Translations under genes and position numbers: made by a program
Shown here: one piece after another, positions 1-23,968 of the stretch
How positions within the stretch are numbered: the first letter of the stretch is position 1
How the letters are laid out: the number at the start of each line of letters is the position of its first letter
Source of the DNA: Trichosphaerium sp. ATCC 40318
Lineage: Eukaryota; Protista; Tubulinea
Direction of reading: 5' to 3'
Assembly: GCA_038496445.1 (NCBI GenBank)
Contig: JALMLS010000340.1
Span: forward strand, 1-64,000
Length of the DNA: 64,000 bases
The notes under the pieces: model-generated
The model's input: only the letters and a program-made list of their open reading frames with translations
What the model was told of the DNA's origin: nothing
Database searches by the model: none

Positions 1-420
1 ATAGTGAAATATCCAAGTATATGAAGCTGTGATAAGTGTATCATCAACAAACAGGATTTGTGTTAGAAAAAGAAGAGTGGCTGTAGCTCCTGCCACATCA
101 TTGCACTGATTGATCATGCAGTTGAAAGGCTCAAGCATAAGGGCAAATAGGGTAGGAGAGAGTGGGTTACCTTGTTCTGTACCATGTTCAACTTTGAATG
201 TTTTGTTGGAGACAACCTCATTAATCCTAACAGCAACTTGAAGCTGCCCAACAATGGCCTTAAAAGAGAGATGAAGGTGGATGAGAATTAATATGAGCAC
301 ATTGTGCACAGCCATAAAACGCCTTTTTGTGGGCAAAGAGAGAATGGAGACCAAAATTTTGATGAGCTTCAACTATTTCCAGAGCTATACCAAAGAGAAG
401 TGTATCATGAGCAATAAATG
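1..420 (-). pseudogene. Degenerate non-LTR (LINE/L1-like) retrotransposon reverse transcriptase fragment, running off the window start
   Basis: Minus-strand translation of ~258-1 gives VAVRINEVVSNKTFKVEHGTEQGNPLSPTLFALMLEPF...QILFVDDTLI, matching the RT GxxQGxPLSP and (Y/F)xDD motifs. The upstream ORF 260-523 has FAHKKAFY, a decayed DxxKAFD. The two parts are separated by a stop/frameshift. Confidence 0.85.
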
Positions 421-619
421 TACTAAAAAAGGCAAAAAAAAAAAAAAAAAGTACTAAAAAAGGCAATAGACTAAGAATGATACCAATTGGACAATTGGTC
501 ACAAAACAGTGTTTCCCACACATGAAATAACACTACAGGAAGGTTACATTCATAAATCATGTTTTAAAAAGTACCTAACCCACACCTAAAAAAAACTAAC
601 AATATTTTTGAAACTCTTA

Positions 620-2547
620 CAGGGCTGAAACTGAAACAAGGCATTTTTAGACAATGTCTAGGCATTTTCATCCAAATAATGCCTTATTTTTTACAAAAAT
701 GCCTAGTTTTTGCCTCATTCAAAAAGGCAAATACAGGGCAATGCCTTATTTTTTGCTCCAAAAATGCCTTACAGTGGTGGAATCGGACAGAACGCGAATT
801 GCACGTTTTGGGCACGTTTTGGGCACGTTTATTTTCCACGCAAAAGACACGTTTTGGACACGTTTTGGGCACGTTTTTTTTCCACGCAAAAGGCACGTTT
901 CTCTTCCACATGCTGGCCACGCAAATCACACGTTTTGGACACGTTTTGGGCACGTTTATTATCTACGTTTTGGGCACGTTTTAGGCACGTTTATTTTCCA
1001 CATTTTGGGCACATTTTGGGCACGCATATTTGCCACGCATATCACACGTTTTGGGCACGCATAAAACACCACTTTATAGAGGAAAAGAAAATAACAGTTT
1101 ATTACGATACATAACACATAACGATTACAAAGAGGTTTGGTACAATTATTACAAACTTTACATAAAACTATCCCCACATAAACAATACCCAGTTTATATC
1201 AACCAACTTCATGTTTTTGCCATTTTACCTGCTTTTTTCGCCAATCCTGCCTTATCGTAAATACTTAAGCAAGAACTTACCTAATTAGGCAAAAAATCTC
1301 AAATCCAATAATCGTCTTTAAAAAGGGGTTTAATGGAGTTATTGAGCCATAATATCCTTAATCTACCCTAAATATCTATTTTCTATCGTTTTTGCCTTAA
1401 AAAGGGGCACCGAACCCCAAACCACCACGAAACCATGCATCGTACCTAATAGTGGGCCATACTTCGTTTTTTAAAGGATTCGTACTAGTAGACCTGAGTT
1501 ATTCACGAAAAATAGGAAAATCAAGAAATTGTTGGTTTTTGGGTATTTTTAGATTTTTTCGCCTACTTTTAAAGCCATGCCAATACAAACCTAACTACTG
1601 CTTACTTGGGTGAAAATACATGTTTTATTGTTGATGATTGGAGGCGATCGGCTTTGGGGTGAGATGGTTGAGTTTTGAGTTTGTCAATTTTTTTATTTTG
1701 AATTTTTCTCCAAATTTCTATTAAGGACAGGTCATGGTTAAAACACGCAAATGGCATGTTTTGGGCATGTTTATTGCAAATATACAACACGCAAATGGCA
1801 CGTTTTGGGCACGTTTTGGGCACGTTTATTTTCCACGCAAATGGCACGTTTTAAGCACGCGTATTTTGTCCGATTCCACCACTGTATATTTGATGAAAAA
1901 TGCTTGCATCTGGTACACAAGATTGCAATGGTTTTGTCTGCATATTTTAAAAAATTATGCCTTCAAATTAAGGCATAACTCATGCATCAATGCCTTATTT
2001 TGGAGACAAAAAGAAAACAATATCATAATTTACAGTGCCTAATAAACCAAGGCATTTTCAGGTAATAACACAACTATTTATTTTAGAATACAGTACACAT
2101 ACAATACACAAAACTCCTAAGTCCACATTTGAAAAAAACCTTAAAGAAAATATGAGATGGTGAAAAAAAAAAAAAAAAAACTTACCTTGTAGTGTTAGAA
2201 TTCCGCGGTCCTGGAAATATCGCAAAGCTCACTCCTACTACTATTGTCGTTGAAATAGGGTGCTGCAGTTCGTTTGGGGGTGGTTTCGTCTAATTTCATG
2301 AATTACTAAAAGCGCTAAGTGCCTGTCTATATAAAACGTCAGTAGGTGATGTGAAAAAAAAAAGTGTTAAAGTTGTTTGACTGTTACTTACCTTAAACCA
2401 CTTCCTTAATGTGATCAGTCCCTATGATATAGTATAAGCAATGTTTTATATATGAATTAAAATACAAGGCATATAATGTTTAGAAAAATAAAGCATAATA
2501 AAGGCATAAAGTACTTGCAATACATGGCATTACTTGATTTATGCAAT
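620..2547. repeat. AT-rich region with dispersed AAGGCA/TGCCTT motifs in both orientations; probable older non-autonomous element interrupted by TIR element copy 1
   Basis: aaggcatttt/aatgcctta-type motifs recur at ~637-771, ~1958-2058 and ~2466-2510, i.e. on both sides of the 772-1884 insertion. The region starts with CAGGGCTG. Boundaries are uncertain. Confidence 0.45.
772..1884 (+). mobile_element. Non-autonomous TIR DNA transposon (MITE-like), copy 1, 1113 bp
   Basis: 18-bp perfect TIR CAGTGGTGGAATCGGACA...TGTCCGATTCCACCACTG with TA on both flanks. Subterminal arrays of the 11-mer TTTTGGGCACG. No coding capacity. Confidence 0.9.
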
Positions 2548-3553
2548 CAGTGGTGGAATCAGACAGAAGGCGAATGGCCTGTTTTGGGCATGTTTTGGGC
2601 ACGTTTATTTTCCACACAAAAGACACGTTTTGGACATGTTTTGGGCACGTTTTAGGCACATTTATTTTCCACGTTTTGGGCACATTTTGGGCACACATAT
2701 TTGCCACACATATCGCACGTTTTGGGCATGCATAAAACACCACTTTATAAAGGAAAAGAAAATAACAATTTATTACGATACATAACACATAACGATTACA
2801 AAGAGGTTTGGTACAATTATTACAAACTTTACATAAAACTATCCCCACACAAACGATACCCAGTTTATATCAACCAACTTCATGTTTTTGCCATTTTACC
2901 TGCTTTTTCACCAATCCTGCCTTATCGTAAATACTTAAGCAAGAACTTACCTAATTAGGCAAAAAATCTCAAATCCAATAATCATCTTTAAAAAGGGGTT
3001 TAATGGAGTTATTGAGCCATAATATCCTTAAACTACCCTAAATACCTATTTTCTATCGTTTTTGCCTTAAAAAGAGGCACCGAACCCCAAACCACCACGA
3101 AACCATGCATCGTACCTAATAGTGGGCCATACTTCGTTTTTTAAAGGATTCATACTAGTAGACCTGAGTTATTCACGAAAAATAGGAAAATCAAGAAATT
3201 GTTGGTTTTTGGGTATTTTTAGATTTTTTCGCCTACTTTTAGAGCCATGCAGATACAAACCTAACTACTGCTTACTTGGGTGAAAATACATGTTTTATTG
3301 TTGACGATTGGAGGTGATCGGCTTTGGGGTGAGATGGTTGAGTTTTGAGTTTGTCAATTTTTTTATTTTGAATTTGTCTCCAAATTTTATTAAAGACAGG
3401 TCATGGTTAAAACATGCAAATGACACGTTTTGGGCACGTTTATTGCAAATATACAACACGCAAATGGCACGTTTTGGGCACATTTTGGGCACATTTATTT
3501 TCCATGCAAATGGCACGTTTTAGGCACATGTATTTTGTCCGATTCCACCACTG
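2548..3553 (+). mobile_element. Same TIR element, copy 2 (1006 bp, fewer subterminal repeats, many CpG transitions)
   Basis: CAGTGGTGGAATCAGACA at 2548 and TGTCCGATTCCACCACTG ending at 3553. The core is near-identical to copy 1. Flanks (AT / TA) do not form a TSD. Confidence 0.9.
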
Positions 3554-3856
3554 TAATGTAAACATTTTTGTGGATGGTTGTGGTGGCAGAGACTTTTGAC
3601 TTTTGTATGCATTGTGTAGACTTGGATGTTAGGGTATGTAAGACAGTTTTTACACTTTTTAATTGATGTCAATTGTTAATATTTTCTCATTTTTATACAG
3701 AAAGCTAATAAAAGAAGACTATTAATTGTTTGGTAGCCTCTGCTACATTGTTCAATGGATTAAATTGAAAACAAAGTGATCAAGGTGCATGGTATCATGT
3801 GAAACTGATTTAAACTATGTACCAAAATATGTCAAACCAAAGTTGAGCAGTTAACT

Positions 3857-4383
3857 TTGATGGAGGATGAAGCCATGCTCACTGGTCTTAACAAAGTATA
3901 TGCTTTAACAGGACAAGGTGCATGTATTGAATTTGGTGAACAACACTCTAGACCTCAACAGATGGGCATCCAAGTCACCACTGCAACTTTTATTTGTTCA
4001 AAAACACACAACATTATTGTTCAAGGTCATGCTGATGCTGCTATCAGCAAAGCCTATAACTGCCTTAACAAAGAAAAAGCTTTTAAAAATCATGGTATGT
4101 GGTATTTGGCATCAAACTTAACCAAGATAGATCATTTAGTCAATGATGAATCCAGTGGAGCTGTTAAGTCAATAGGTGACATTATTGAAGCTATTCCTAG
4201 ACATGGTGGCTTACAACATCATTATGACATTTGGCATAAACAACAAAAAGTAATTAAAAAATTTAAAGCATTTAGGAATCAATGTTGGAAAGCATGCGAA
4301 AACTACTTACGAACTGCAAATTGTGAAAGCTTTCATGCTGTGGCAAACATGTATTGTCCAAAAGGAATGGATCAAATGTTTAA
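3857..4383 (+). pseudogene. Decayed DDE transposase (Kolobok/Mutator-like PF20700-type), interrupted at the TTAA 4380-4383
   Basis: The ORF contains HLVNDESS...HHYDIWHKQQKVIKK and RTANCESFHAVANMYCPKG, resembling the TD...DxWH and TxxxExFHxxxxxYxPK motifs. An apparent continuation CRKSLATLE* follows 7806. Confidence 0.65.
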
Positions 4384-4483
4384 GGGTCCAGGTCTAAGTT
4401 TAAAAAAAAAAACACTTAATAAAGTTACTTAAGAGAACTGCAGCAATTTAATTAATAACTAAAACAGGTTAAAATCATGTGAC

Positions 4484-5735
4484 ATGAGTACAAAGTGGAG
4501 TACAGATCCAAAAAGCCATAATTATTGCACAATTTGTGGAAAGTCACCCTATTCTACTGGTCACATCAAACAACTGTTTTTCAACCAACCAAACAAACAC
4601 AAGGGTACTTTTAATTGTAAGGAGGCCCAACTTCCAAGAAAACCACAAATGAAAACAATGAATATACCTAACAAAGCACAGAATAGACATAGCAATCAAC
4701 TCATAGTGGCAACAGATATCTTTTTAGCTATGCTCAAAAAAATCCCATGTAAAAAGTGTAAAGGGCTAAACTTCAAAAATATCAAGTCAAAAAAAATGGT
4801 ATTGTAACAATAGTCTCGAATGTTCGTTATGTGGGACGACATGAAACAATGCAACACATTCGCTTGAAAGATATTCAGCTCCCAGTGGCAAAGAATATTT
4901 CAAAGTCAATGTACAAGCAACTACAGCAGTGTTATTAGCCAAAGTAAGCATTAAAAAACTTGAAAACATTTTAAAAATGATGGATTTACCATGTATACCC
5001 AAAACACAAGCAGCAGAAATATCAGCATTTGTTTGGCCAGCAGTATTTGAGGTGTGTCAAGAAGAATTAGAGGTTAGAATGAGAGAGCATAATTGAAAAA
5101 AAAAAAAACTCCTTTGGCGGATGGTCTAACAGAGCTTACAATAAAGCATCTCACAGAGTTACTTTTGGTGTGTTAATTAAATTTGTTTATATTTAATATG
5201 TTGTAGGGTATACAACAAAAATAAAAAGATAGTATATTTATTGTGATGTAAAAAGTAAAAGTAACAGTAAAATTTAAAACAACAGCACACACTTACCCTG
5301 GTAATCATTCTGGCTCATCGAAAGGAATGAAAGGAGCTTCCAATAGAGACATGGCCAAAGATCTGAATGATACTGGATTCCTGCCATTTATATCTGCAGT
5401 TGTTTTGAATGGAGATTCTTCTGCTAATTCTATATGGAGTACATACAACAAAGTGATTTATCAAGATCCAAGTCATTTTAAAAAAGCATTAAAAAAAAAA
5501 CTTGGAAAAGTGTTTTTATAATACTACATAGATGTATAATGATCAATGTGCACTGAAATTAGTGTGTAAGCATGCTTTACATACAGTAACTTGAGCAAAA
5601 AGATTATCATTATGTAAAAAAAATCCCTTTGCAGTCCTTGGAGAGCTTCCTACAGAAAAAACAAAACTGCAAGTGACATTGCAAAGTTTGTATACAGAGA
5701 CACTTGTACATACTTGAAATTCTTGGTTCTATGTT
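4484..5735 (+). pseudogene. Frameshifted transposase of the Kolobok-type element
   Basis: Pieces: IPCKKC (Zn knuckle); EYFKVNVQATTAVLL...MMDLP; SFGGWSNRAYN (decayed DGxWxxRG); NHSGSSKGMKGAS; VVLNGDSSA (decayed DGDS); QDPSHFKKAL. Multiple stops and frameshifts. Confidence 0.75.
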
Positions 5736-6819
5736 CAGTGGTGGAATCAGACAAAATACGCATGCCTAAAACGTGCCATTTGCGTGGAAAATAAACGTGC
5801 CCAAAACGTGTCCAAAACGTGCCCAAAACGTGCCATACGCGTGTTGTATATTTGCAATAAACGTGCCCAAAACGTGCCATTTGCGTGTTTTAACCATGAC
5901 CTGTCCTTAATAGAAATTTGGAGAAAAATTCAAAATAAAAAAATTGACAAACTCAAAACTCAACCATCTCACCCCAAAGCCGATCACCTCCAATCGTCAA
6001 CAATAAAACATGTATTTTCACCCAAGTAAGCAGTAGTTAGGTTTGTATCTGCATGGCTCTAAAAGTAGGCGAAAAAATCTAAAAATACCCAAAAACCAAC
6101 AATTTCTTGATTTTCCTATTTTTCGTGAATAACTCAGGTCTACTAGTACGAATCCTTTAAAAAACGAAGTATGGCCCACTATTAGGTACGATGCATGGTT
6201 TCGTGGTGGTTTGGGGTTCGGTGCCCCTTTTTAAGGCAAAAACGATAGAAAATAGGTATTTAGGGTAGTTTAAGGATATTATGGCTCAATAACTCCATTA
6301 AACCCCTTTTTAAAGATGATTATTGGATTTGAGATTTTTTGCCTAATTAGGTAAGTTCTTGCTTAAGTATTTACGATAAGGCACGATTGGCAAAAAAAGC
6401 AGGTAAAACGGCAAAAACATGAAGTTGGTTGATATAAACTGGGTATCGTTTGTGTGGGAATAGTTTTATGTAAAGTTTGTAATAATTGTACCAAACCTCT
6501 TTGTAATCGTTATGTGTTATGTATCGTAATAAACTGTTATTTTCTTTTCCTCTATAAAGTGGTGTTTTATGTGTGCCCAAAACGTGTGATATGCGTGCCC
6601 AAAACGTGCCCAAAACGTGGAAAATAAACGTGCCTAAAACGTGCCCAAAACGTAGATAATAAACGTGCCCAAAACGTGCCCAAAACGTGCCATACGCGTG
6701 TTGTATATTTGCAATAAACGTGCCCAAAACGTAGATAATAAACGTGCCCAAAACGTGTCCAAAACGTGCGATTTGCGTGGCCAGCATGTGGAAGAGAAAC
6801 GTGCCTTTTGCGTGGAAAA
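5736..6819 (-). mobile_element. Same TIR element, copy 3, inverted and truncated (lacks the left TIR and ~110 bp)
   Basis: Starts CAGTGGTGGAATCAGACAAAATACG, the reverse complement of the copy 1 right end. The core matches copy 1, and similarity stops after ...GTGCCTTTTGCGTGGAAAA. Confidence 0.9.
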
Positions 6820-7579
6820 CGGATTTATGAGAAGCTGAATCTTACTTTATCAAACCGAGTACAATCTGTCTGTGATGTTAACAATAAAGCAAAACAACAA
6901 GATAAAAAGTGAAAGCAAAGTCCAGAATGTAAGGCAAAAAAAGTCCATAAGCAAAGGAAAAGACAAAAAAGGGAACATACTCATGCTTCTATCTCTCAAA
7001 CCAATTGTGATTGATACAAAAAAGCATCAAAGAAAAAAAAAGCAGCTTTGGATAGCTATGATGATTTACAAGAAGTGTTAAATGTCGACAAAGTGACAGT
7101 TGTTGCTTTGTGGCACTATCTAAAGGCCCAAAAAATGGCTGTTGGTAGAAACAAGTCAGTTCTTGCTGAACATATTCACAGCCTTTTTGTAAAAATGTCT
7201 TAAAACAACATACAGGATGTTAACAATGCTGTATAAATAAAAATGAGAGAGATATACACACATGATTTGAATTTGTGATTGAAAAAAAAAAAAAGTATTT
7301 TGCTCACCTGACAAATGCGGTACACTGTGGTATGTCAAAAGTTGGAATATGCAATAAAATATTGTGCTCATATCTACCAGACCTGTGAGCACTTGGTAGG
7401 TTTTGGTAGGATTGAGATTTACTAAATTTTGGTTTTTTTTTCCAAAACAGCCAAATATTGTATGATTTATGTGCCTCAGCTTGTAGCCAGACGAACATCA
7501 TGACCACCACCAAAGTACAGCACATGTCAAGGGGTTAAAAGTGAACAAGAAGAAAAACAAAAAAGGCAACACTGCACTA

Positions 7580-7788
7580 CAGTAGTAAAATCGGAAGTAC
7601 GTGTGAAGTATGTATATTGTACATGTGAAAAAGTACATGACACGTACATATATTGTACATGTCAAAATACATGCCATGTACATATGTCATCTGTGTGAAA
7701 AGTACATGGCACGTACATATATTGTACGTGTGAAAAGTACGTGCCACATATGTATATTGTATGTGTGAAAATCCCGATTTCACTACTG
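7580..7788. mobile_element. 209-bp MITE with TA TSD and internal ~36-bp degenerate tandem repeats
   Basis: TA|CAGTAGTAAAATCGG...CCGATTTCACTACTG|TA. Interior repeats of GTACATATATTGTAC(A/G)TGTGAAAAGTACATG. Confidence 0.8.
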
Positions 7789-8906
7789 TAAAACCCGGAC
7801 CCTTAATGTAGTGTTGTAGAAAGTCTTTGGCTACATTGGAATAGTGCTTTGGACTCACTTAAAAAAGTTATGCAGACTTATTTTTTGTAAAAAATTGAGC
7901 TTCACAACAACCACAGAAAAAAAAATTGCCTTTAGATTACCAACAGCAATACTAATTGACACCATGTGATGTCAATTTTATTGCAATGTGTAATTTCTGG
8001 TATTCCAAACACAATATCCTCAGCCCTGAGGCGAAACTGAGTTATAGGTGGTAGAGGTATGTTACTGAACATTGCCACAATAAACCAAAAGTTGCATCAA
8101 ATTAAAAAATATTCAAAAATGAAAAAGAAAATTGTTGAAAATTATCAATCTGTCATTAATTGTTTGAATGGCATTTAGAACTGCGCGCCGAGCATGTTTA
8201 AGGCTCTCAAGTACACGCAATAGCGGCATTACAGTACAGAAATTACGTCCAAGCAAAAAAAATAAACCCACAAGCCACACACGCATAAAGAATGGTGGAG
8301 CAGCCACACAGTTCGCTCAGCAAATCGCTTGGTGCGCTGAGTTCCGATCTAAGCAATCTTACGTTTTTAGGCGGAGTAATACGCCACACGGGTTCAGAAA
8401 CGGCCTTGGCTTGCCGACACTGGCACTTTTAGGGTTAATCACATTATTCGGTACGCATTCTCACTTAGGCAGCCACTGAGCAACGTTAGATGATGGCAGT
8501 TAACATTTGGCACAACGACTAAAGACGGGTTTATTGTAAAAAAAAAACAGGAGCACTTTGAAAACAGAACAAGGACACCATTGCATAATTATAATATAAT
8601 AAAGGATTTACTACAAGTACAAAGATTGGTTAAAAAATAGTCGGTCTGAATGGCCAACAGACAGACTAGAACCGGCCAGCGAGTATTAAACAACTCGCCT
8701 ATAATCAAAAATGGGAGGGTGGTTGTAATGCCAATTAAAAACGTGGAGGAGTCGAAAGGAGAGGGTACACAGCTGTTACTTGCTGAGTGTGTTCAAGTAT
8801 GAGATGGCATGCTAGATACAGCGGGTTGCAATTGCGTACACACCGGCCACTGAGCCTAGCGAGACCCTACACCCCCAACCCCACCACTATTTCGGCATTG
8901 CTGGCA

Positions 8907-9997: not shown

Positions 9998-10728
9998 ACC
10001 AGCGTCCCCACATTTGCTTAGGGCGCCTACTGCCGCGTGTGTTTGGTCAAACCTGGGATGTGTAAGTTTGCCTCCTTTTTTTTGCGTAACTGCAATTTCC
10101 CAAGTGTAGATTAAATTACTTCAAGTGCGTACGTAATCTTGGCAAACGTTTGAAGGGAGGTGGACAAAAAGTTTTTAGATCGTTTTGTGTGTGACTGGTG
10201 ATCAGGAAACCAGTTGTAAGTGACTCGCGAAATTACGTTGTGTGGCAATAATGAAATTGGTGGTATTTTGATTTGCAAAATAAAAGACAACTTAGACCTA
10301 AATTAGATTGACTTATGTCACAATTCGCTCTCGCTACTTTACCTTGGCTTTTATGCGGTTCATTTGGGATGTAATACGGTTTCTCAGCGAAATTTCACTT
10401 ACAATCACAACGTACCATTTTGGAGCTTTTTTCAATATCCACTGACAATTTGCAACCAAACGACCGATTGGCATGTACTGATACAACCGTTGCGCCGTGC
10501 GCACGTGTCACGTTATTCGCAGTTGGCACCTACCCCTGCAAGGTTATGTATTGTCTTTCTGCATGTCTGTCATATGTAGCCCAGCGCTTGCACTGTAAGG
10601 AGAAAAACACAACAAAGACGAAACTGACAAAAACTTCAGTCGCAGCGAAAAAAAAAAGTCTTTGGTTTTCCTTCCTAGCTGTTCTTTAGCACCCCGTAGT
10701 ATCTTGTCCCACAGCTTTGCTTCGAACA

Positions 10729-13700
10729 ATGGCTTTTCTTTGTCGAGGTAAACAGCGCAACCGCAGCACTTTTACCCTTTTTCCACCAACCAGCTTGATG
10801 CAGCTTCTCTTGCATATTCTTAACAACTTCTAGCAACCAACGGCGTGAGATCTTTCCATTTTGCAAGACGGCAAACAAGTACGATACACCCATATTATAG
10901 CTCGTTTTGATTCATCTCGCTCAAAATACAACCGCATAATTGTCGTCTAGACACAAAACAATGGACCGAAGCGCGAGCTCGCCCTCAAATGCTCTCAGTA
11001 TTGCGCAGTTACAGCACTGATACTGCTGAGCTCGATTTGGCTTCGAAGGACAACCACAGACCGTTCCTTGATGCTATCGCCAAGAAGCTAAACATAAAGG
11101 GCACTCCTTCTGAATGGTACTTTTCACTAAGCGGTTTTTTTTTTTTTGTTGGCCGTATCAGCTTACGTTTTCAGGTACGATGTCCCTCAAACCAAATTTC
11201 GGGAATTCCAAGGTGTCCGTGAAGTGTTGAGGTAGGTGGTTAGGGGTTTTTTCGTTTAAATCGCTTTTGTAGTTTGGTAACCTTTGCGGTTTAACTAACT
11301 TTTTGTTTCTTAGACACTACGGTGGCTCTATGTACATGGCACTAAAGACTATTTATCCAGAACACTCATTTCAATTCTGGAAATTCAAGTACGCGGTTGT
11401 AGTGCGTTTGCTCGTCAAAACTCAATTTTCTCAAGGCGCACCACTACTACCGGCGATATCTCAGGAGACCAAGAAAGAGAGTTCTTCGAGTATGCCCGCG
11501 AGAACCTCCAAATCAACAACCTGAATGATTGGTACAAGGTCAGTAAGACCAGGCTTCACAGAATCGGTGCGTTTTGTTTATCTTTCCTTACCTTTCTCCT
11601 TGTACGTCAAATACTGACCCTCACTACGCAGGCGGCGGACAGATCCTACAAAAGTACGATGGCGATCTATGTGCTGCACTACAGGCAGTGTACCCTGACC
11701 ACGAGTTTGTACCTTGGAAATTTAGACGCACCACAAAGGGCTTATTTACCAACATTGATGTTGTAGTCGAGTTCCTTAAATGGGCTGAAAAAGATCTCGA
11801 AATTGATGACCCTGAAGGTACACACATGGCTTGTTGCAACAACAGCACTATACTAGTATTTTTTGGAAAAACCTTTTTTTGAAAACAAACCTTTTCGGTG
11901 TGTTTGACTAACTGGCTGTAGAATGGTACCGTATTTCACGTTCTCAATGGGACGAAATTGGTGGTGGCGCTCTATGGACCACGTATCGTCAAAACTTGTT
12001 CAAAGCGTTCGATATCTTGTACCCAGAGCATGAGTTCAGCGAAGAAGAATTTCGTACACGTGTTAAGAAGTCCACACAGAGGTATGTACTGCCTCTTAAA
12101 CGCGGCACAACTGCTTTTTTTTGTTCTTTTGTCAGTTTTTTCTTTGTCAACAAGTTTAAAGACAAGTGAGTGACGCCAAATCTCATTATATTTGCATAGA
12201 TTGCTATGCAAGAAAACACAAAAAGTATACCCAGACAACGAAGTGTTCGAAGACTACCAAGATCCTGATATCAAATACGATGATGATCTTCCAGTCGAGT
12301 TTGATATTTACATACCAGAGTTGAAGCTAGCATTGGAATACCAAGGCGAGCATCACTTCCACGATAACCCTGGTTACTTTGGTCCTGCCAGATTATACGC
12401 TCAGGCTGATGAGCGCAAGGTTGAGGTTGCCAAAGCACACGGTACGTCATTTTGACCGCGATCCTACTTTTTTTTTTTACTACCAGCCAACGCATCGCCC
12501 CCTCACGCGTCACTAGGTGTCACTGTAGTTCCAATTCCATACTGGTGGGACAGAAACATTGACACTGTCAAGGCCACTATTCACTATCACAGACCTGATC
12601 TCATGCCAAAAGACCAGGTAATCATCCAAACCCCTCTACATTTTTTTTAAAATTATATTAACACTGATATCAGGTTCCTGAAGGAGCACGTCCTCTTATC
12701 ATGGATGTTGACAACTTTACACCACCTGGTGGTGCTGTTGAAGACAGACTTTCTGTCAACGACTTTATGCACGGCGCTGATTATGCTGGCCAACCAGTTG
12801 AAGGTTGGTGGATGTGTGAGAAACTCGACGGTATTCGTGCCCTCTGGGACGGAAAGAGACTATACAGTCGTAAGGGTAACTTTATCCCTGCTCCTCCTCC
12901 ATTTTTGGAGCGCTTTCCTGAGGACACTCCTCTTGAAGGTGAATTGTGGGTTGGTCGCTCAGAATTTTACACTCTCATGTAAGTCTCAACACACGGCAAC
13001 CTTTTTTTTCGTTCCTACCAAAAAAACAAAGGCCATTTTTGTCACATCAGATTGACTAACCGTTTGGGTGAATAGGAGACAGATTTACGCATCAAAGAAT
13101 TGGGCTCAGATCCGATTCCACGTTTTCGACCTTCCGCTCAACAAAGCTGGTGCGTAATAAATACATATATATATATAACAACACGGCGGCCATGGCAATA
13201 AACTAATTGTTTTCTAGATCCTTGGGAGAAACGTTACGAGCAAATGAAAGAATTGATCCCTGAAAACGACCCTGTTCTTCGTCTTGTTGAACACGAGCAA
13301 ATCAAGAACAAAGATCACATGCAGAAAAAACTAGACGAAATTATTGGTCTCGGCGGTACGGCCATATACTACACAAATGCTGTTTTGATTGTTTTATATA
13401 TATCTTCTATATCTAATAGTCTACTAGGTGAGGGTGTCGTTATGAGAAAACCTGGACACTTGTACACTCCTGGAACAACGAACTCTGTCCTAAAGATCAA
13501 AGAGTACTTTGATACCGAAGTAAAAATGATTGCTCCCCATGTTACTGAAAAGAAGTCAAACCTTCTTCACTGCGAAATGTACGCACCTTTTTTTCTTTTT
13601 ATTTTTTGGTATCTCTACCTGTGTCAAGTAAAAAAAAACAAAATATTTTTACTCACGCAATTTTTTTTTTATAGGCCAAATGGATTGGATGTATTCGTCA

Positions 13701-13888
13701 AGTGCACAACATATGATTACAACAACCCTCCACCAGAGGACTCAGTCTTGACCATCTCCCATCAAGGTCTTGCACCAAGCGGTAAACCGCGTTATCCATT
13801 CCTATTGAGAAGGCGTCATGAACTCTCTTGGGAAGAAGTATGTCTCAAATGGCCTACAATCCGTAAAAAGCAAACAGTCGAAAAGTAA
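10729..13888 (+). CDS. Putative mitochondrial repeat-nuclease-ligase fusion: presequence + 3 DWY repeats + Vsr/DUF559-like PD-(D/E)XK domain + minimal ATP-dependent DNA ligase (adenylation + OB domains)
   Basis: Spliced N-terminus MAFLCRATNGVRSFHFARRQTNTKQWTEARARPQMLSVLRSYST. Repeats carry EWY/DWY/EWY. Nuclease FDIYIPELKLALEYQGEHHF...DERK...IPYWW. In-frame intron 12618-12673. Ligase motifs EKLDGIRALWDG, LEGELW, FHVFD, GEGVVMR, LKIK and GKPRYP. Confidence 0.85.
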
Positions 13889-14186
13889 ATCACCTGCAAT
13901 TGCCTCTCTACGTCTAGCTAGTGGCGTTATGGTGCCGGTCACTCGTACGAGCTTGCCGCATTACAGTGTGGATCGGCCATACACATCTTCTTGTTTCTAC
14001 ATCATGTGCACGAGTAAATGCGTAGTTGTTATTTGTAACCCTTGCTTCAGTTGATGTCTTTGATTAGTTACCTTTTTTTTTTTCTCTTCGAAATTGTTTT
14101 TTGGCAGTTGGTCTCAAACAAAGTTTCAGATAATGGAACAATCAAGACTAAGCCTGTAATACAAACAATCAGTATTTAAACACCCA

Positions 14187-17100
14187 ATGGCTCAAGCACG
14201 TTTGGAACAAGTGGCTAGCAGTGCGCGGGTACCTGGCGCTTATGCAAAGATTTACAAAGAAGAATGCGCCTATTCCTTCCACACTGCGGTACTACTGTCC
14301 TTCATTGGCATCATCTCACCACTTTTTACGAAGGAAGATGAAGGCGGTGTCATGGTGGACCTAAACAGCTTCATTGCCTTCAGCCCAGAGTTCTGCAAGT
14401 TGAATTATGCTAAGACGTCCCATTCGTTGTACTTGAATGTCGTTAAAAAGCGCGTTCCGCGTAAAGTGCGTTAGCACCTCTAGGACATGCCTTTAAACTA
14501 TGAAATTAGGATGAAGAGACTAAAGAAGCTACATCAACGAAGGTTGATGAGCCAGCAGCCAAACGCCAACAATTAACCGTCGAACTCTCCGATGTACCTA
14601 AAGACTACGAATACGAGTACACGTACAGTCTTGTATTGCAGCCTGACGAATTGCGAATCGCGTACCCTAACCAGGTGAGTTCTGGGGAAGCACACAAGGG
14701 GTAAATGGACACGCAGTCTTTCGGCAGTTGGGTTAATCGCATGCTGGCAGTTAACTGTCAGCCGTCAGCGAGAATGAGAATACATTTTATTGACGATCTG
14801 TATTTAGGACGTTAAGATACCAGAGGCGATAGCATCTGCTGCCAACGCTGTGATCTCAAGAGACAGCGCACTAAAACAAGATGCAACCAAGATGGTCAAT
14901 CTTTTTGATCAAAGCGTTGAGAGCCAGTACTCCTTTGGCCTCTTACAACTCGACAATGGCGTTAAAGTGCCAAGGCACGGCTGGAAGTGTGCAGGTGCGT
15001 ACATATTGGAGGGGACGCAATTCAGCTTTTTATTTTGTTTTTTGGGTTTGCGGCTTTTGCGACTTTGTGGCTCACGCATATATTCTTAGTGTGCGGACTT
15101 GAGGAGAATCTTTGGTTGAATATTACAGATGGATTCATAGGATGTGGTCGTAGTCAAATTGGTGTAGTGCAAGGTGCGTTCATATAAAGGCGTTGCGGCC
15201 AGCAGGCTGAGGGCCACACAATCTCTCTGACAATAACAACTAATGCGGTTCCTCCTATTGAACAGGTAATAATCACGCGCTCGAACACTACAAACAAACA
15301 ACCTATCCAGTGGCTGTGAAACTTGGATCTATCAGTGCGGAAGGCGCAGGCACGTTATGACGATTAGCTTTGTTATTGTTGTTGTTTTGTTTACTCATTT
15401 GTAGAGGTTTGGAGTTATGCGGATGACAACATGATCAAAGCACCTCTGCTTGACCAATGGCTATTGCACTGGGGCATCGACCTTAAGGCGATGAAAAAGA
15501 CTGAAATGTCAGTGGCAGAGCTCGCTGCACAGGCAAACAACAGTTTCGAATGGAGCAGGGCTGAAGAGCGTGGCAAGACTCTGGAGAACATATTCGGACC
15601 AGGGTACACTGGCATCATCAATTTGGGCAACACATGCTACATGAATTCAATTCTTCAACTGCTCTTTACCGTGCCTTCATTCATCAAGCGATACGGAGCG
15701 GCAGCACAAGACATCTTCAATGCATCTAACCCATCGTCTGCTCCAAAAGATTTTCACGTTCAAATGTACGACAGACAACATTGTAACGCCCCCACGTGAT
15801 TCTACTCACAACCGGACTAGGGCAAAATTTGCGCAAGGTTTACTCTCTGGACGTCATTCTATCAAACAAACTGAGACAAAGGACGAGCAAGGACTACCTA
15901 AATACGTGCGTGTTGTGACGTCTGTTTCCCAGTTGTTACTCCAGTCGACTGATTTATATATTTCGATTGTAGTCTCCAAATTGTGTAAAGCCTTGGATGC
16001 TTAAAGCAGTCGTTGGTGGCAATCACAAGGAGTTTTCGACGCTGAGGCAGCAAGACGCATCCGAGTTCTTCCAGTACCTGATGGAGTTTGTAACGCGAAA
16101 AGAAAAACTTAGCGGAGGACTAGACCCAACTCAAGTATTCAGATTTTACATTTCCTCAAGGCTAGAGTGCCAAGCCTCCAAAAACGTGCGCTACACCAAA
16201 CGTGTTGATAACGTCCTGTCTCTTCCTATTCCCCTCGACAAGTCTACCAACATGGACCAAGTCATAGCCTGGAAAGAGGCTCAATCCAAGCTGACACAGG
16301 AACAAATAGACAAATCTAAAAGGTGCGAACAGGTTGCAACTGTTTTTTTTAAATACAAGCTGAACGATAAAAACAAAAAGTAGTCGATTGATTGATTGAT
16401 TTAACAAACAATAGGGACAAGACTTTCTCGCCCGTATATCCAAGTGTGAACTTGACAGATTGCATCAACGCTTGGGCATCGACAGAGACTATAGATGGAT
16501 TTTTCTCTACAGCGATACAAGGAAGGACCACGGCAAATAAGTGCGATTATACATTTATTTGGTAGCCATCTATTTTTCTAACTTGTGGATGTGGTAGGTC
16601 ATCCAAGTTCTCTACGTTTCCGCCGTACTTGGTGATTCAAATGCAAAAGTTTGTGTTCGAGGATGGTTGGGTTCCTAAGAAGCTTGAGGCAACCCTTAAT
16701 GCGCCTGACGAGCTAGACATCGAATACCTTCGCTGCAAAGGGCTACAACCAAACGAAAAAGAACTTCCTGAGGACAAGAAACAAGCAGCTGCGCCTGCTG
16801 CATCAACGTTTCAAGTGAATGAAGGTACATTCCATTACGCTTTTTTTCTTTTTTTTTTTTGAAGATACAATACATCTGTGCCACTCATCTTTATATGTAG
16901 TTGCTCTATCATCCATCATGAGTATGGGATTGTCTATATCACAAGCCAAGGCAGGCCTGAAAGCCACTGATAACAACGTAGAACGGTAAGCTGAGGTATT
17001 GCGTGCTACTTAACAATACTAACGCCTTCTCTCTTGTCAGTGCCATTGAGTGGATATTCTCTCATCCTGATATCCCTCCAGAAGAGGAAGCAGCACCACA

Positions 17101-17546: not shown

Positions 17547-20500
17547 TTACATTTTTGAGGATATTAGGCGTTCAAGTTTTTCAACTTGGTTTTGTAATGC
17601 TACCCGTTGTGAGCGCTCTTCTTCAAGTTGCTCGCTCAACTGTTTAACTCGGCTCTCTAATGCCGCCAGGCGGTGGCCAATTGGAGGACCTGTCCTTGGG
17701 CTATGTCCTGGCGTTCTTGGACTAAGTCCGGGCGTTCTTGGACTTGGTAATGGCGGCTTTGACCGCGTGTTGGGCACAGGAAGTGTACGCTTTGGCTGGC
17801 TGCCTTCGGGCGTCCTAGGCGATGAAACGTGTGGCAGCGAGTGCACTCGACTGTGCCATGCACATGCAGACATTAGTTTTGAATGCCAAACTTCAATATT
17901 TTGCTTGTTTGCTGTAAAGTCACGAATTAGACGGCGATTATTGAATATAAAAAAAGTACATTTTAGATCTAAGGTTATATTTTCGCCTTTTAGCTGAATT
18001 GCCTTGTCTCCCTTTCGTGTCAACGTAGCAGACGCCAATTGTATGGTAACTAATGGGATCGAGAGAGTCTACAAGCATTGTGAGTGGTTGTTGCATAAGC
18101 AGGTGGTTGTACATTTTGACTTGCAAAGCAGTAGAGAGCCTCATCTGTTAAAATACAATAGAGATCTTCATCTCCTATTTGGAGTGTGCCCTTGACAACT
18201 CGATTAGAGAGAAATGTCAAAATCCAAGTCGATAATACAACGTGGCGTTGGAGGTACCTTATGTTGTGCTGCAGTGTTCCAGTCAATATCGCTAGTCATC
18301 GCGGCAGTGTGCACTTTACGCCTGCTTGATGGGGCCGACGTACTGTCTCTGGCGTTCTTGGTATCCGGAATGGCGATTGCCTTTAGTTTGGCTGGTGCCA
18401 CTGTTTTTTTGCGCGAGGGCGCAATGCGTTGGACGTAGCTAACTGATGGGCGTAATTAGTTATAAAAAATGTGGGATAGGTACAATGGTATTACTGGTTT
18501 TAATCTACTCGCAAAAAATGACATACCAGGAAACCATACGCTATTTCCGTTTACTTTGGTTTGATACCAGTAACCTTTGCTGTCTTCTTTGTACACTGTA
18601 AGTTCATCATCGACTTCCAACGATATTTGATTTGGTCCAGCGGCCTGTATCACGCCGTTTTAGTCAATGTGCGGCGTATAAAAGAGAGTGGACGTACAGT
18701 AAAGTTTGCAATAGCGCGAACCTTGTAAAGACCTTCGCTTGCTTTGGCTGTGTCTACCTAAAGTACCGTTTTAGAGGGTTTTTTTTTCTCACTTATAGTA
18801 CGTACACGTGACAAACTGCTTGGTTGTGATTCTATTTCTGGTTGGTTGTCAGGATTATCGAATAGTAGCGTATAATACTCAATATACAATTTGGTGATAA
18901 GAGCAACGGTGGGAGATTCCAAGACTGCTATGCCTGGATTTTCGTTTTCTTGTCGCAATATATTAGGTCCAAACACCATTGCCAAGTTCTCAAGTGTCAT
19001 TTTGTTGATATCCTTCATTTTTGATACGCGGTTGAGATGCGCTGCCAAGTACCTTAGTACTATCAAATTCTCTTCTGGCAGTGCCTTGGCAATCTTTATG
19101 ATTGCAGTGACCTTGTCTTTCTCAGCTATTTTGCTTGTACCAATGTTGAGCAGCGGTTTATAGTACTTGTACGGCAACAAAGGCTCAGGTAGACTCCTCA
19201 AGAAGGATTTAAGCAATCCAGCAACCGTGTGTGGATTATCACACTCGTCCAAATCTACATTCTCGTCTCTATCAAATGCTTCTTTGTATGTTTGCATGTT
19301 TTGAAGGTTTCCTGTTAATCGGAATATCCCTTCTTCGTCAAGGCTATTCGCGTCCAGGTACGCTATTGTGTTTGTAATGATAGGTGGAAGAGCCAGACCA
19401 GGTTTGTTAGCAGTGCCTCTATCTTGTCTCTTTTTTAAAAGTTCAGAGAGCGGCACACCAAAAACCCTAACAAATGCTTAGTAAGAGAACAATAAATTCT
19501 GGTTTGTAGGTGAACGTACTTTCCTTGTCCTGTATTGAGTATCTGTCCCTTCATGACGTTGCTCCATTCGCGCAACACGGACTCAGAGTAGTCATCTGAG
19601 GTTATGACTAAATATTCAGATGCGGTCTTGCTAGTGAAGCCTTTAAACTGCCTATAAAAGTTGGAAGAATTAGGCAAATGATCAACATGTGCTGGTATAA
19701 AACCTTTGAAGTATGATTGAGGGTCGGTCCTTGTTGGTTTTCTTTGTCATTGTGATGGTGTAATAATTCAATGGCACTGCGCCTGCAGGTGTGTCGTTCT
19801 ATGAAAGAGGTGGTTTTTAGTAAAACTTGTGTGAGCTACAGCTGCGTACGCCTCGTGACCGGAAATAAAATAAAAACAATCCTGCGAATACAAACCACCT
19901 ACGTTGTCGCTTTGTTAGCTCTTTCTTTAGTTCTGATATATCCTTCTCCTGATTCTTCTTTCCTCTACCAGCTGCCAATTCAAGTCAGTATTGTCACGTA
20001 CACGCTACCACAAATATACCTGATTGCTTCCACAGGTAACCTTGTTTGCGCGGCCTCTGGATGAGTGTTGAGTAGTGCTAGCGAGAGCGATGGAATTAGT
20101 AATCGAGTTCACCTTTAAAATAGTAACTGAGCAGCAATGCTGTGCTTACCTTTATCAGTGCAACCACAGGTGCAATTATGAGCGTCACGTTGGCGTGTTC
20201 CGCAAGTACTGTTTGAAGACACGTTGATGAGTTCATCCAAACGCGCTTTTCGGCGTTGGCTATTTGGAAGACAAATTCGTCCTTCCCCAAGTTCAACCAC
20301 TAAATACGCACTTGTCAGTTCGAAATAATTCGTTACACCATCATTTTGTTTTGGTGTGAACGTACGTCCTGTAAGCGCTCTATGAACAAATCTGCAACAA
20401 ATACATGTCAAAAAAAAAAATGTACACTAGATTTTGAAACAAAAACGTACGCATGGGGCGGCTTGCATCAAGTAACAAAGTTCGTTTTTTGTTATTCTCG

Positions 20501-21186: not shown

Positions 21187-23968
21187 ATGTTAGCACGCAC
21201 CTCTACGCTACGAAAAGGGCGTCACTACTGGAGTAACGTTAAAAATCGCCAACAGTTTTTAAAAGAAGTAAGGGTGATTTTATGGCGTTGAATAGCTTAC
21301 ACACGCAAGGCTGAGATCAAATTAAACATTAATGAGCCGCAAGAGTGGTATTTCGTTACTCAGAGCTCCCTGAAAAGGTGTGGAGGCAAAGGGGTGTTGA
21401 GGTAGTGTCTTACAGCACTGTGGCTAGTTGTTTTTTACAAAGTGACATTTTAGCGCGTACGGAGATTCCATTTACAATGTCTTGCGTAGTACTCATACAG
21501 ATTTTAATTGGCTACCTTGGAAATTTGGTAAGACTTATTATTACTCCCTCAATTTTCTTCCACGTGACACGTGCATTGTTAGTAACCGTTCAATCGTCCT
21601 ATTGGAATAAACATCATAACCGCATGCAATTTATTGAGGCAGTACGTGTATCGTGCAAGAAGCGTGTTTTGTGCACATCTAAACCATCTTTGTGTGACAG
21701 GCTATCGATAAATTTTCGATCAAGGACGCTAATGATTGGTATAATGTAACAGTGCCACAAATTGACGAGCTCGGAGGCGACAATCTTAGGTACCTATGAT
21801 ACTGGGTTGCAGTGTAGTACTGATGCCTGCAGAAACTTTAGCCACTTGCTTAAAGATGTGGTAACGGACATGTACCCGAACAATTACTGGGTCAAATGGC
21901 TCTTTAGTATGTCAACACTGCATTGCGTGCGTTGATTTAACTTGATTTTTGATAGGTATTGAACCAGAACAGTTTTGGCGCCAACAAGAGAACGCAACAC
22001 TCTTGATCAAAGCTGTATGCATTCATCATTCAAGCAGCAATTATAGATACAAACCTGTTACATAGGCTGAGCATCATCTTGGCATTCTAAACTACAGGGA
22101 TTGGCGCAAAGTATCACCGACAAATGTGCAACGTTTGGGTGGCAACGCTCTGCTACGAAAGTACGACTTTCCTTACAATCAGACCGCTTACTGTTACAGG
22201 TACATGGGATGCTCGCTATTTACGCTCCTTCAAACCGTATATCCGAAAACCTCGTGGAGTGTTTGGGATTTTGGTATTCGAACTGTCTTGTTCATTAGCT
22301 AGCCGTCTGACACACTGTAGAGTATACTGACAAAAGCAGTTGGTCTTCGCAAACCATAATCGAATTCGTTCGTTACGTACGTTGCTTGTAAATTCCCATA
22401 GTATTGTTATCAAGCAACCAGTTTACTCCGTTGCTCTAGGTAGAACATGAGCTTGGCATCTATCATGTATGTGATTGGTACAACGTCCTTGCAGAAACAG
22501 TTCACGAGCTTGGTGGAAAGCGGTTGTTGGCTCTGTATGCTGTTTTCATGTCTACAACCTAGGTTCCTCATTCCTTTCATAGCTTCTTTGGCGCCTCTCT
22601 GCCAAAGCTATTGTTGTTTGTTTACACTGATTATCACTGGGACACGTCCCTTTTTTGTACGTGTGCAGATGATACGATTGTTTGCTAGTTGTTAATTACA
22701 CGTAATTAGCCCGCAGGAGATGGCACCAGGACGAACAACTTTCTTTTGTTATTGAGGTTGGATTTCACACGAGGCCTGTGTCTAAACGCTCTAGCTAGGT
22801 GGAACGAGAGATGGGTATAAAAGAGTTGAGTGACTGGTACAACGTTCCTGCGGCAGAAGTATTGAAACTTGGAGGTAGAAGCTTCATTACAAGGTGCATC
22901 AACATTCACATAACCTGAACCTCACAACCTCTTAGATATTACACAGGATCCGTCCAAAAGATGTTGCAAGAGGTGTACAGCGACTATGATTGGGAATTTC
23001 ATAAATTTGGTGCGACTGAGGTGGACTCTCACATGATGATTCATCTACTATGTTAACAGCTACTCTGCAGGTACTGTGTCTCAAACTTTCTGGAAAGATA
23101 TCACCAAAATCCGGGCATACATAAGTTTTGTGGAGCAGGAATTAGACATCAAGCAAATGGTGCGTATAATGCATGCCCTTCAAAAGACTTAAATTGTTTA
23201 TTTTGTTGTAGGAAGATTGGTATCGCGTGTCACAGCACCAATTATCAGATATTAAGGGTGGTAACGGATTACTCCACCACTTTCCTTTAGTATTGGGGCA
23301 AGCACATCCAGAATACGATTGGGACTTTAGTTTGTTTTCAAAGCGAGACAAGCGAGCTGTACAAAGGTATGCACTAGTGAATTAATGCCAGCGTTTATAA
23401 TCGCTACAAAGAGTTTTGGGCACGTGTGCACAACGCGTATTTCCTGGCTACGACGTCTTGGAGGAATACAGCCCTAAGCAACAACAAACGGGCTACTTAC
23501 AGCCACTCACGTTGGATATTTTCATCCCACAGTACGCTGTCCAAAAAGTTGTATATCTCTGTGTAGTAATTGTTGCATAGATTGAATTTGGCGTTAGAAT
23601 ATCAAGGGCAACATCATTACACAGATAACTCACGTGGGTTTGGCCCCGCTAAAGTACAAGAAGGACGTGACTTGGAAAAGGTGTCGGCATGCCTTGAAGC
23701 AGGTGCGTGTTGTGTTTTCTCATTTCTCTGGTTGCGCTAGAAGCTAGTTCGCTAAATACTTGACTTAGGGATCGTGATTGTACCCATTCCTCACTGGTGG
23801 GTGGCTGGAGACTGCGCATCTCTCGTTGCGACCATTCTACATTACAGTCCTGAGGCACCAGTTGCATTATCTTCAGATGGTGCAAAACCTCTTGTTGCAT
23901 TTCCTGTTGAAGGAGCAATGTCGCAGCAAGTCATGACGCCGAACAATCTCTCCTTGCAAGATGGTTGA
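21187..23968 (+). CDS. DWY-repeat / PD-(D/E)XK-like nuclease protein, paralogue 2 (~6 repeats, no ligase)
   Basis: MLARTSTLRKGRHYWSNVKNRQQFLKE|AEIKLNINEPQEWY..., then further DWY/DWR repeats. KRAVQR|VL; LDIFIPQ|LNLALEYQGQHHY; DLEKVSACLEAG|IVIVPIPHWW. The 5' end is uncertain. Confidence 0.8.

Follow-up and report, generated by a model that had tools for sequence, protein, structure and literature searches.

The 64,000-nucleotide stretch analysed here (the window) comprises positions 1 to 64,000 of the forward strand of contig JALMLS010000340.1 (assembly GCA_038496445.1) from the tubulinean protist Trichosphaerium sp. ATCC 40318. It carries a gene whose product of 687 residues combines a presequence-like N-terminus, three helical repeats, a nuclease-fold domain and a DNA ligase (Table 1). 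This fusion gene is genuine, is expressed and has been conserved in evolution. What is new in it is an undescribed family of 72-residue repeats, joining a known ligase of the Lig E/K type and a nuclease of the Vsr fold. With moderate confidence, we read it from its sequence as a nuclear gene for an imported mitochondrial DNA ligase that would be tethered to a repeat-guided, active Vsr-type endonuclease.

Every mitochondrion that has DNA requires a ligase, which is LIG3 in animals and an isoform of LIG1 in yeast and plants. To our knowledge, the ligase that serves the mitochondrial DNA (mtDNA) of amoeba-like lineages has not been established, and the fusion protein is a strong candidate for this role in amoeba-like eukaryotes. 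Maintenance of mtDNA in Acanthamoeba is described as highly divergent in a study of its mitoproteome, the main text of which mentions no DNA ligase (PMC13632651). The fusion links eukaryotic ligase E, the study of which has so far concerned DNA repair in rotifers, to organelles of other lineages than the kinetoplastids. It also exposes a large family of proteins with 72-residue repeats and a Vsr-type nuclease in lineages for which Pfam-based screens were reported to detect no RAP proteins (PMC8190603). Should the repeats recognise sequence, the protein would be a natural endonuclease–ligase fusion of interest to enzymologists and tool builders.

Gene structure and transcript

Three-frame translation of 10700–13900 shows coding segments that switch frame at short GT..AG intervals, and the spliced frame is uninterrupted from the ATG at 10729 to the stop codon at 13886–13888. 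The RNA evidence consists of Logan contigs of four public runs (X1, X2, X3 and X10), compared over 10300–14300. In X1, X2 and X10, which come from three different studies, a single record of about 2.2 kb carries all junctions, and the joint that leads from the nuclease to the ligase (12617|12674) is present in all four runs. An initial annotation, made from the nucleotide letters without database searches, had proposed that the two parts are fused across the intron at 12618–12673, and the RNA junctions bear this out, with 12617 joined to 12674 in one mRNA. A ligase encoded by a separate gene starting at 12701 was also considered and is ruled out by the single contigs of three studies that cross the junction; a minor internal start remains compatible with them.

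The 5' part of the gene differs from the annotation, which implied a single intron of 203 nucleotides (10748–10950). The RNA shows two introns here and between them the exon 10834–10878, with the joint 10747|10834 found in X1, X2 and X3 and the joint 10878|10951 in all four runs. Because these introns enclose a 45-nucleotide exon, the protein has 687 residues rather than 672. Contig starts and an adapter-tagged end (the adapter is at 10700 in X2) place the 5' end of the transcript at about 10692–10700; position 102 of the X1 record corresponds to 10951, which puts that end near 10692. On direct reading, the interval from 10692 to 10729 holds no other ATG than the one at 10729, which, given this 5' end, is the first of the transcript. 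The contigs end at about 14002–14038.

Searched with the nuclease exon, a collection of 1.8 billion representative proteins yielded P0001, a protein of 687 residues from an MMETSP marine-protist transcript, which matches the gene model at 686 of the 687 residues and differs at F475L. P0001 served as the reference protein for the later analyses. Pfam scans of single exons had matched almost nothing; the domains emerged with the full-length protein. P0001 and the contigs of runs X1, X2 and X3 carry the T>G difference at 12916 (F475L), those of X10 do not, and a C>T difference at 12584 occurs in X2 only. Both look like strain differences rather than editing.

The ligase

The ligase part is recognised by sequence and by structure. 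The match of P0001 to PF01068 covers residues 443–591 and, at 40.6 bits (E 2.9e-10), exceeds the cut-off of 26.2; PF14743 (OB_2) scores 19.6–22.1 bits, under its cut-off of 28. In the PDB, sequence matches are significant for three Lig E entries only, 8u6x, 4d05 and 6gdr. The best structural match is 4d05 (Z 23.8), in which both domains are aligned over model residues 425–665; it is followed by other DNA ligases, among them that of the Chlorella virus. The columns that are invariant with respect to bacterial LigE are K444, D446, G447, G483, E484, F513, D514, E568, G569, K589 and K591. By these comparisons the ligase core is Lig E-like with motifs I–VI intact, and K444 is the predicted adenylated lysine. 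The initial annotation had assigned the ligase to the LigE type, in agreement with these matches, and the motifs that it listed for the whole protein are all present: three W-Y repeats, E..DIYIP..LALEYQGEHH..D..K..IPYWW, KLDG, EGEL, FD, EGVV, KIK and an OB fold.

The two-domain core, a nucleotidyltransferase with a putative OB_2 domain and motifs I–VI, resembles that of bacterial Lig E, as in Psychromonas sp. SP041 (4D05), Alteromonas mediterranea (6GDR), 8U6X and the leaderless Myxococcota LigE, to which the ligase part is 34–40% identical. The fusion protein differs from these in lacking a periplasmic leader, in its N-terminal extension of 394 residues made up of presequence, repeats and nuclease, in a shortened OB loop and in an extra C-terminal helix, to which nothing aligns in the bacterial LigE rows P0244, P0263 and P0219, which end shortly after motif VI. 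Without a leader and with a large N-terminal module it is therefore not a canonical Lig E. The closest free ligases, at 34–41% identity, are mostly Lig E of Myxococcota, many of them with a WGR domain, together with a fungal protein. This agrees with the leaderless cluster of Myxococcales and fungal Lig E that has been described (PMC8455567).

Two groups of eukaryotic enzymes offer precedents. Ligase K of kinetoplastid mitochondria (k-alpha and k-beta) was judged to be related to ligase E by the shared domains PF01068 and PF14743 and by tree placement (PMC10665377); on the basis of that study, the ligase of the fusion would be of a related type. Eukaryotic ligase E with appended poly(ADP-ribose)-binding zinc finger (PBZ) domains, which act as targeting modules, functions in DNA repair (PMC10665377). 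Such enzymes, found in the bdelloid rotifer (AvLigE), Mortierella and Thecamonas, resemble the fusion in having a eukaryotic ligase E core with an appended targeting module, but the appendage is directed to nuclear damage sites, whereas that of the fusion is a repeat array and a nuclease. A restricted homologue search with the ligase region added only three ligases of bacterial or PBZ type. The metagenome protein P0293 (489 residues), with a Lig E core and PF10283, resembles the rotifer enzyme of PMC10665377.

The nuclease domain and the repeats

Structures were predicted with AlphaFold2 for the whole of P0001 with 24 aligned homologues (mean predicted local distance difference test score, pLDDT, 83) and, with 40 homologues, for the N-terminal 353 residues on their own (pLDDT 93, predicted template modelling score 0.84). 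Residues 277–394 form an alpha/beta domain with a restriction-endonuclease-like core and a model pLDDT of 93. Its structural matches, with Z scores of 8.7–9.7, are the homing endonuclease I-Bth0305I (3r3p, Z 9.7) the Toxoplasma mitoribosomal chain 9g6k_Li (9.6), Vsr (1cw0, 9.3), a DUF559 protein (3hrl, 9.3) and the RAP module of FASTKD4 (9gek, 9.2), a set on which both VIA searches agree, and in addition the mitoribosomal chain 6z1p_AS, which has served as a template for the RAP domain (PMC8190603). Of these, 3r3p, 1cw0 and 3hrl each align over the whole nuclease domain. The set supports the Vsr/DUF559/RAP-like PD-(D/E)XK fold that had been proposed from the motif.

D315, E326, G329, H332, D350 and K353 are invariant or at least 90% conserved in family alignments of 24, 40 and 70 sequences, the first of which includes fused members. 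The catalytic set of I-Bth0305I consists of D196, H213, D222 and a conserved acidic residue that corresponds in position to Vsr F62 (PMC3239194). The residues of the fusion occur in the same order, and the spacing from D to H is 17 residues, as from D196 to H213. From this order and spacing, D315, E326, H332 and D350 would be equivalent to Vsr D51, H69 and D97 together with the F62-position residue.

Profile searches place the domain less easily than structure does. Pfam RAP (PF08373) gives no match at E<=1 for residues 281–394 or 45–394 of P0001 and none at E<=0.01 in 70 nuclease domains of the family; the likeness to RAP is confined to the fold (9gek, Z 9.2). Neither DUF559 nor DUF2726 matches the nuclease domain of P0001. 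DUF2726 (PF10881) reaches E<=0.01 in 14 of the 70 domains, with P0010 and P0029 above the cut-off of 24.7 bits. A sequence profile built from the 70 nuclease domains had no match among PDB chains, not even at E 10. In the ESM Atlas, one cluster of the family bears the name 'RAP domain-containing protein'; DUF4046 labels one cluster and appears as PF13255 on another and on P0160, and a literature search for DUF4046 gave nothing.

Residues 52–276 consist of three tandem units of 72–74 residues, each with five helices, according to a repeat hidden Markov model (HMM) and the structural models. The conserved core residues are D-W-Y, G-G, L-L, Y, Y-P and W. Among the best 50 matches of either VIA structure search, no PDB entry was aligned mainly to the repeat array, which is not proof of a new fold. 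By the repeat HMM, 139 of the proteins searched contain 657 units in all, from 1 to 12 in each; fused proteins contain three to five. In most repeat units of the five family genes in the window, the match breaks near positions 41–46 of the 73-position model, and in the ligase gene the breaks coincide with introns such as 11232–11313, 11567–11631 and 11818–11921. This coincidence suggests that the arrays may have grown by duplication of exon pairs.

The first 40 residues contain seven Arg, one Lys and a single acidic residue, which is residue 28. In the AlphaFold model residues 1–44 have a pLDDT below 50 and are disordered apart from a short helix at 32–40. Composition and an RSY|S motif make it plausible that this N-terminus is a mitochondrial presequence that is cleaved.

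Distribution of the fusion

A representative protein search found 831 proteins at E<=0.001, of which 166 were examined for domain order. Repeats and nuclease occur together in 129 of the 166, and in 109 of 127 near-full-length nuclease matches no more than 60 residues separate the domain from the C-terminus. Eighteen of the 166, P0001 included, combine all three modules in the order repeats, nuclease, ligase. Their named sources are Cavostelium apophysatum, Arcella intermedia and Pyxidicula operculata, all of them Amoebozoa, and the others come from metagenomes and metatranscriptomes. Two of the fused genes lack introns; both come from long metagenome contigs in ENA. No paper describing the architecture of presequence, repeats, nuclease and ligase was found in the literature, and the statement of the initial annotation that it knew of no characterised protein of this kind stands; the architecture itself is not unique, as the 18 proteins share the domain order. 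InterProScan annotation, as used in PMC10665377, would probably miss the N-terminal module, because it went unrecognised by Pfam in P0001.

A quick maximum-likelihood tree was built from 16 fused ligases and 40 sampled free Lig E, and in it a single branch separates the fused from the free ligases (SH-aLRT, the Shimodaira–Hasegawa-like approximate likelihood ratio test, 92). The free sample is narrow; with this scope, the tree is compatible with a single origin of the fusion. A crude presequence rule is passed by 37 of the 63 Met-initiated members that have at least 25 residues before the first repeat, and many of these N-termini are textbook-like. Among the fused proteins, presequence-like N-termini are found in P0001, P0010, P0097, P0106 and P0129.

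Four further genes of the window encode repeats and nuclease without a ligase (Table 1), which with the ligase gene makes five family members within 31 kb; those at 37520–39002 and 39534–41459 stand head to head. The D..E-Y-Q-G core is present in the matched exons of all four, the H-H and D-x-E-K parts are seen in three, and I-P-Y-W-W in two.

Searches for the same domain order, as the annotation had advised, recovered it in other eukaryotes, mostly Amoebozoa; viruses share the nuclease domain only. On the viral contigs of IMG/VR, the nuclease domain has at least 304 relatives that share the motif E-Y-[QH]-G-x-[HQ]-H, and neither the repeats nor the ligase were found on these contigs. The viral relatives carry the domain after winged helix-turn-helix (wHTH), CapR, DUF723 or zinc-finger modules, and the BFVD matches from phages and giant viruses include homing endonucleases, DUF559 proteins and 'restriction endonucleases'. 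The DUF559/DUF2726 nucleases of phages and giant viruses are modular like the fusion, with a binding region N-terminal to the nuclease, but they use other modules than the 72-residue repeat and have no ligase. A viral origin of the fusion was considered and rejected, since the IMG/VR contigs carry the nuclease domain alone.

At one metagenome locus (L001), the intronless fused orthologue P0105 (L001:3001-5196) adjoins a second LigE-like ligase (L001:5388-6275, -), which has no repeats or nuclease upstream. On its other side lies a gene for an XPG/FEN1-family nuclease (L001:1418-2642, -), called in two pieces.

Proposed mechanism and its alternatives

LigE enzymes themselves lack a DNA-binding domain. 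If the fusion protein acts in mitochondria, its Arg-rich N-terminus would be cleaved on import, and the ligase, adenylated on K444, would seal nicks of mtDNA in replication and repair. Binding of the substrate and targeting would fall to the repeat array and the nuclease-fold domain, and this module would probably also provide incision. Like Vsr, the endonuclease would then incise a single strand where it recognises a site or lesion, and after processing of the gap the tethered ligase would close the nick. The initial annotation had proposed a 'recognise-nick-seal machine' for organellar DNA, a mechanism that is a hypothesis. That DNA is the substrate we infer from the class of the ligase, the viral relatives with modules of DNA-binding type, the retained His and the precedents of ligases K and E. 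Vsr and the EDxHD enzyme I-Bth0305I (3R3P) share the fold (Z 9.3–9.7) with the nuclease of the fusion, and residues of catalytic type and their spacing probably correspond as well.

Several observations weigh against this reading. The Vsr-like pocket of FASTKD4, in which Asn replaces the catalytic His, has been reported to be catalytically inactive (PMC11879112), and fold and residues therefore do not prove cutting. Fused P0055, P0112, P0105 and P0157 begin directly with a repeat and have no presequence. In the tree the fused ligases sit on very long branches, and a loop segment of the LigE OB domain is missing from them. Mitoribosomal proteins of Toxoplasma and Tetrahymena give the best full-length Foldseek matches, and helical repeats with a C-terminal Vsr-like domain behind a presequence are also the design of the RNA-binding FASTK and HPR/OPR-RAP proteins. 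Lastly, the family is lineage-expanded, with five genes in the window, as is more typical for RNA factors that are gene-specific than for enzymes of DNA repair.

The first alternative keeps a mitochondrial DNA ligase and takes the N-terminal module to be for binding only, a DNA or nucleoid handle that replaces the DNA-binding domain missing from LigE and does not cut. The minimal nature of LigE and the PBZ targeting domains appended to other eukaryotic ligase E are in its favour, as are the reportedly inactive pocket of FASTKD4 and the flexible linker, owing to which the two halves of the protein need not cooperate chemically. It has to contend with the invariance or near-invariance of D315, E326, H332, D350 and K353, which extends to the fused members, and with the difference from FASTKD4, which has Asn where the family keeps His. 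We regard this alternative as unlikely, though less so than those that follow.

The second alternative is an organellar RNA factor, an amoebozoan counterpart of the RAP, FASTK, HPR and OPR proteins, with repeats that would bind specific mitochondrial transcripts and a ligase that would join or repair RNA or seal RNA-splinted DNA. The top full-length Foldseek matches to the Tetrahymena and Toxoplasma mitoribosomal chains, the C-terminal parts of which match the nuclease fold (E ~3e-3, probability 0.82–0.98), speak for it, and so do the name of the ESM Atlas cluster and the large family with its range of 1 to 12 repeats and frequent presequences. The organellar proteins with helical repeats and RAP (human FASTKD4, 9GEK; 9G6K_Li; 9I05_Xr; 6Z1P_AS) have the same order of presequence, helical repeats and C-terminal Vsr-like fold, with Z scores of 8.7–9.6 to the nuclease domain in addition to the full-length Foldseek alignments; the fusion is set apart from them by the missing Pfam RAP match, the five-helix repeat of 72 residues, the catalytic His that it keeps and the ligase, which it alone has. 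RAP proteins were reported to be undetectable in Amoebozoa by Pfam-based screens (PMC8190603), which leaves a RAP-type role open there. The case against it lies in the failure of Pfam RAP to match P0001 or any of the 70 family nuclease domains, in the ligase itself, a DNA ligase with OB domain and motif VI whose nearest relatives are bacterial LigE, and in the sequence relatives of the nuclease, which are viral proteins with modules of DNA-binding type. An RNA_ligase model scores below threshold, and in two orthologues only. An RNA factor appears improbable to us, somewhat more so than a binding-only module.

A bolder reading, which we hold to be quite improbable, is that the 72-residue repeats are readers of nucleic-acid sequence with variable array length, like PPR, OPR/HPR or TALE repeats. 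The family would then consist of hitherto unrecognised sequence-guided endonucleases of amoeba-like eukaryotes, encoded in the nucleus and targeted to mitochondria, and those with a ligase would on their own cut and rejoin organellar DNA or RNA at specific sites, by incision and resealing or by rearrangement.

The least probable alternative is a domesticated or selfish site-specific endonuclease–ligase outside mitochondria, homing-like and acting on nuclear or viral DNA, the N-terminus of which would be no transit peptide: the homing endonuclease I-Bth0305I as top single-domain fold match, the numerous nuclease relatives in phages and giant viruses, the tandem cluster of family genes in the window and the fused orthologues that lack a presequence are consistent with it, but the gene is interrupted by 14 introns and its expression is seen in independent samples, the viral contigs hold the nuclease without repeats or ligase, and many family members have classic presequence-like N-termini. 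Signs of mobility, such as flanking repeats or residence in an intron or intein, were not seen, and no search for them was made.

Table 1. Features of the fusion gene and of related genes in the window (residue numbers refer to the spliced product)
Feature	Position	Strand	Details and evidence
Transcript	10692..14038 (approximate ends)	+	15 exons, 14 GT..AG introns; RNA contigs
Coding sequence, 687 residues + stop	10729..13888	+	RNA junctions; equals P0001 except F475L
Introns, first seven	10748-10833, 10879-10950, 11117-11174, 11232-11313, 11389-11435, 11567-11631, 11818-11921	+	
Introns, last seven	12082-12199, 12442-12516, 12618-12673, 12979-13075, 13150-13217, 13356-13427, 13579-13674	+	
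In-frame 45-nucleotide exon (residues 7-21), absent from one-intron 5' model	10834..10878	+	RNA joints
Phase-0 intron of 56 nucleotides between nuclease exon and first ligase exon	12618..12673	+	Joint in all four runs
Presequence-like N-terminus (residues 1-42)	10729..11012	+	Composition; ends ..LRSY|ST
Helical repeat 1 (residues 52-125)	11040..11448	+	Repeat HMM; models
Helical repeat 2 (residues 130-201)	11461..11741	+	Repeat HMM; model
Helical repeat 3 (residues 204-276)	11748..12070	+	Repeat HMM; model
Vsr/EDxHD-type PD-(D/E)XK nuclease domain (residues 277-394)	12071..12617	+	Conserved columns; fold matches
Nuclease residues	D315 = 12303-12305; H332 = 12354-12356	+	D315, E326, H332, D350, K353, then P368-Y-W-W
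Flexible linker (residues 395-422)	12674..12757	+	pLDDT <50 for residues 406-422
Ligase nucleotidyltransferase domain (residues 423-593)	12758..13507	+	PF01068; LigE alignment; PDB matches
Ligase motifs	K444 = 12821-12823	+	I K444 (KLDG); III G483-E484-L485; IIIa F513-D514; IV E568-G-V-V; V K589-I-K591
OB domain, probably of LigE type (residues 594-665)	13508..13819	+	Motif VI R656-Y-P-F-L-L-R-R-R
C-terminal helix (residues 666-687)	13820..13885	+	Model; alignment
Repeat + nuclease family gene without ligase	21307-23704	+	~6 repeats
Repeat + nuclease family gene without ligase	30263-31861	+	~4 repeats
Repeat + nuclease family gene without ligase	37520-39002	-	~4 repeats
Repeat + nuclease family gene without ligase	39534-41459	+	~4 repeats

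Other features of the window

The gene that begins at 14187 (+) resembles a ubiquitin hydrolase of the USP5/UBP14 type, as judged by eye. Further along the window are a RhoGAP exon (18761-19456, -) and an exon of an Aa_trans amino-acid transporter (42021-43010, -). The GC content is 34–37% over positions 1–8000 and 42–46% from 8 to 32 kb.

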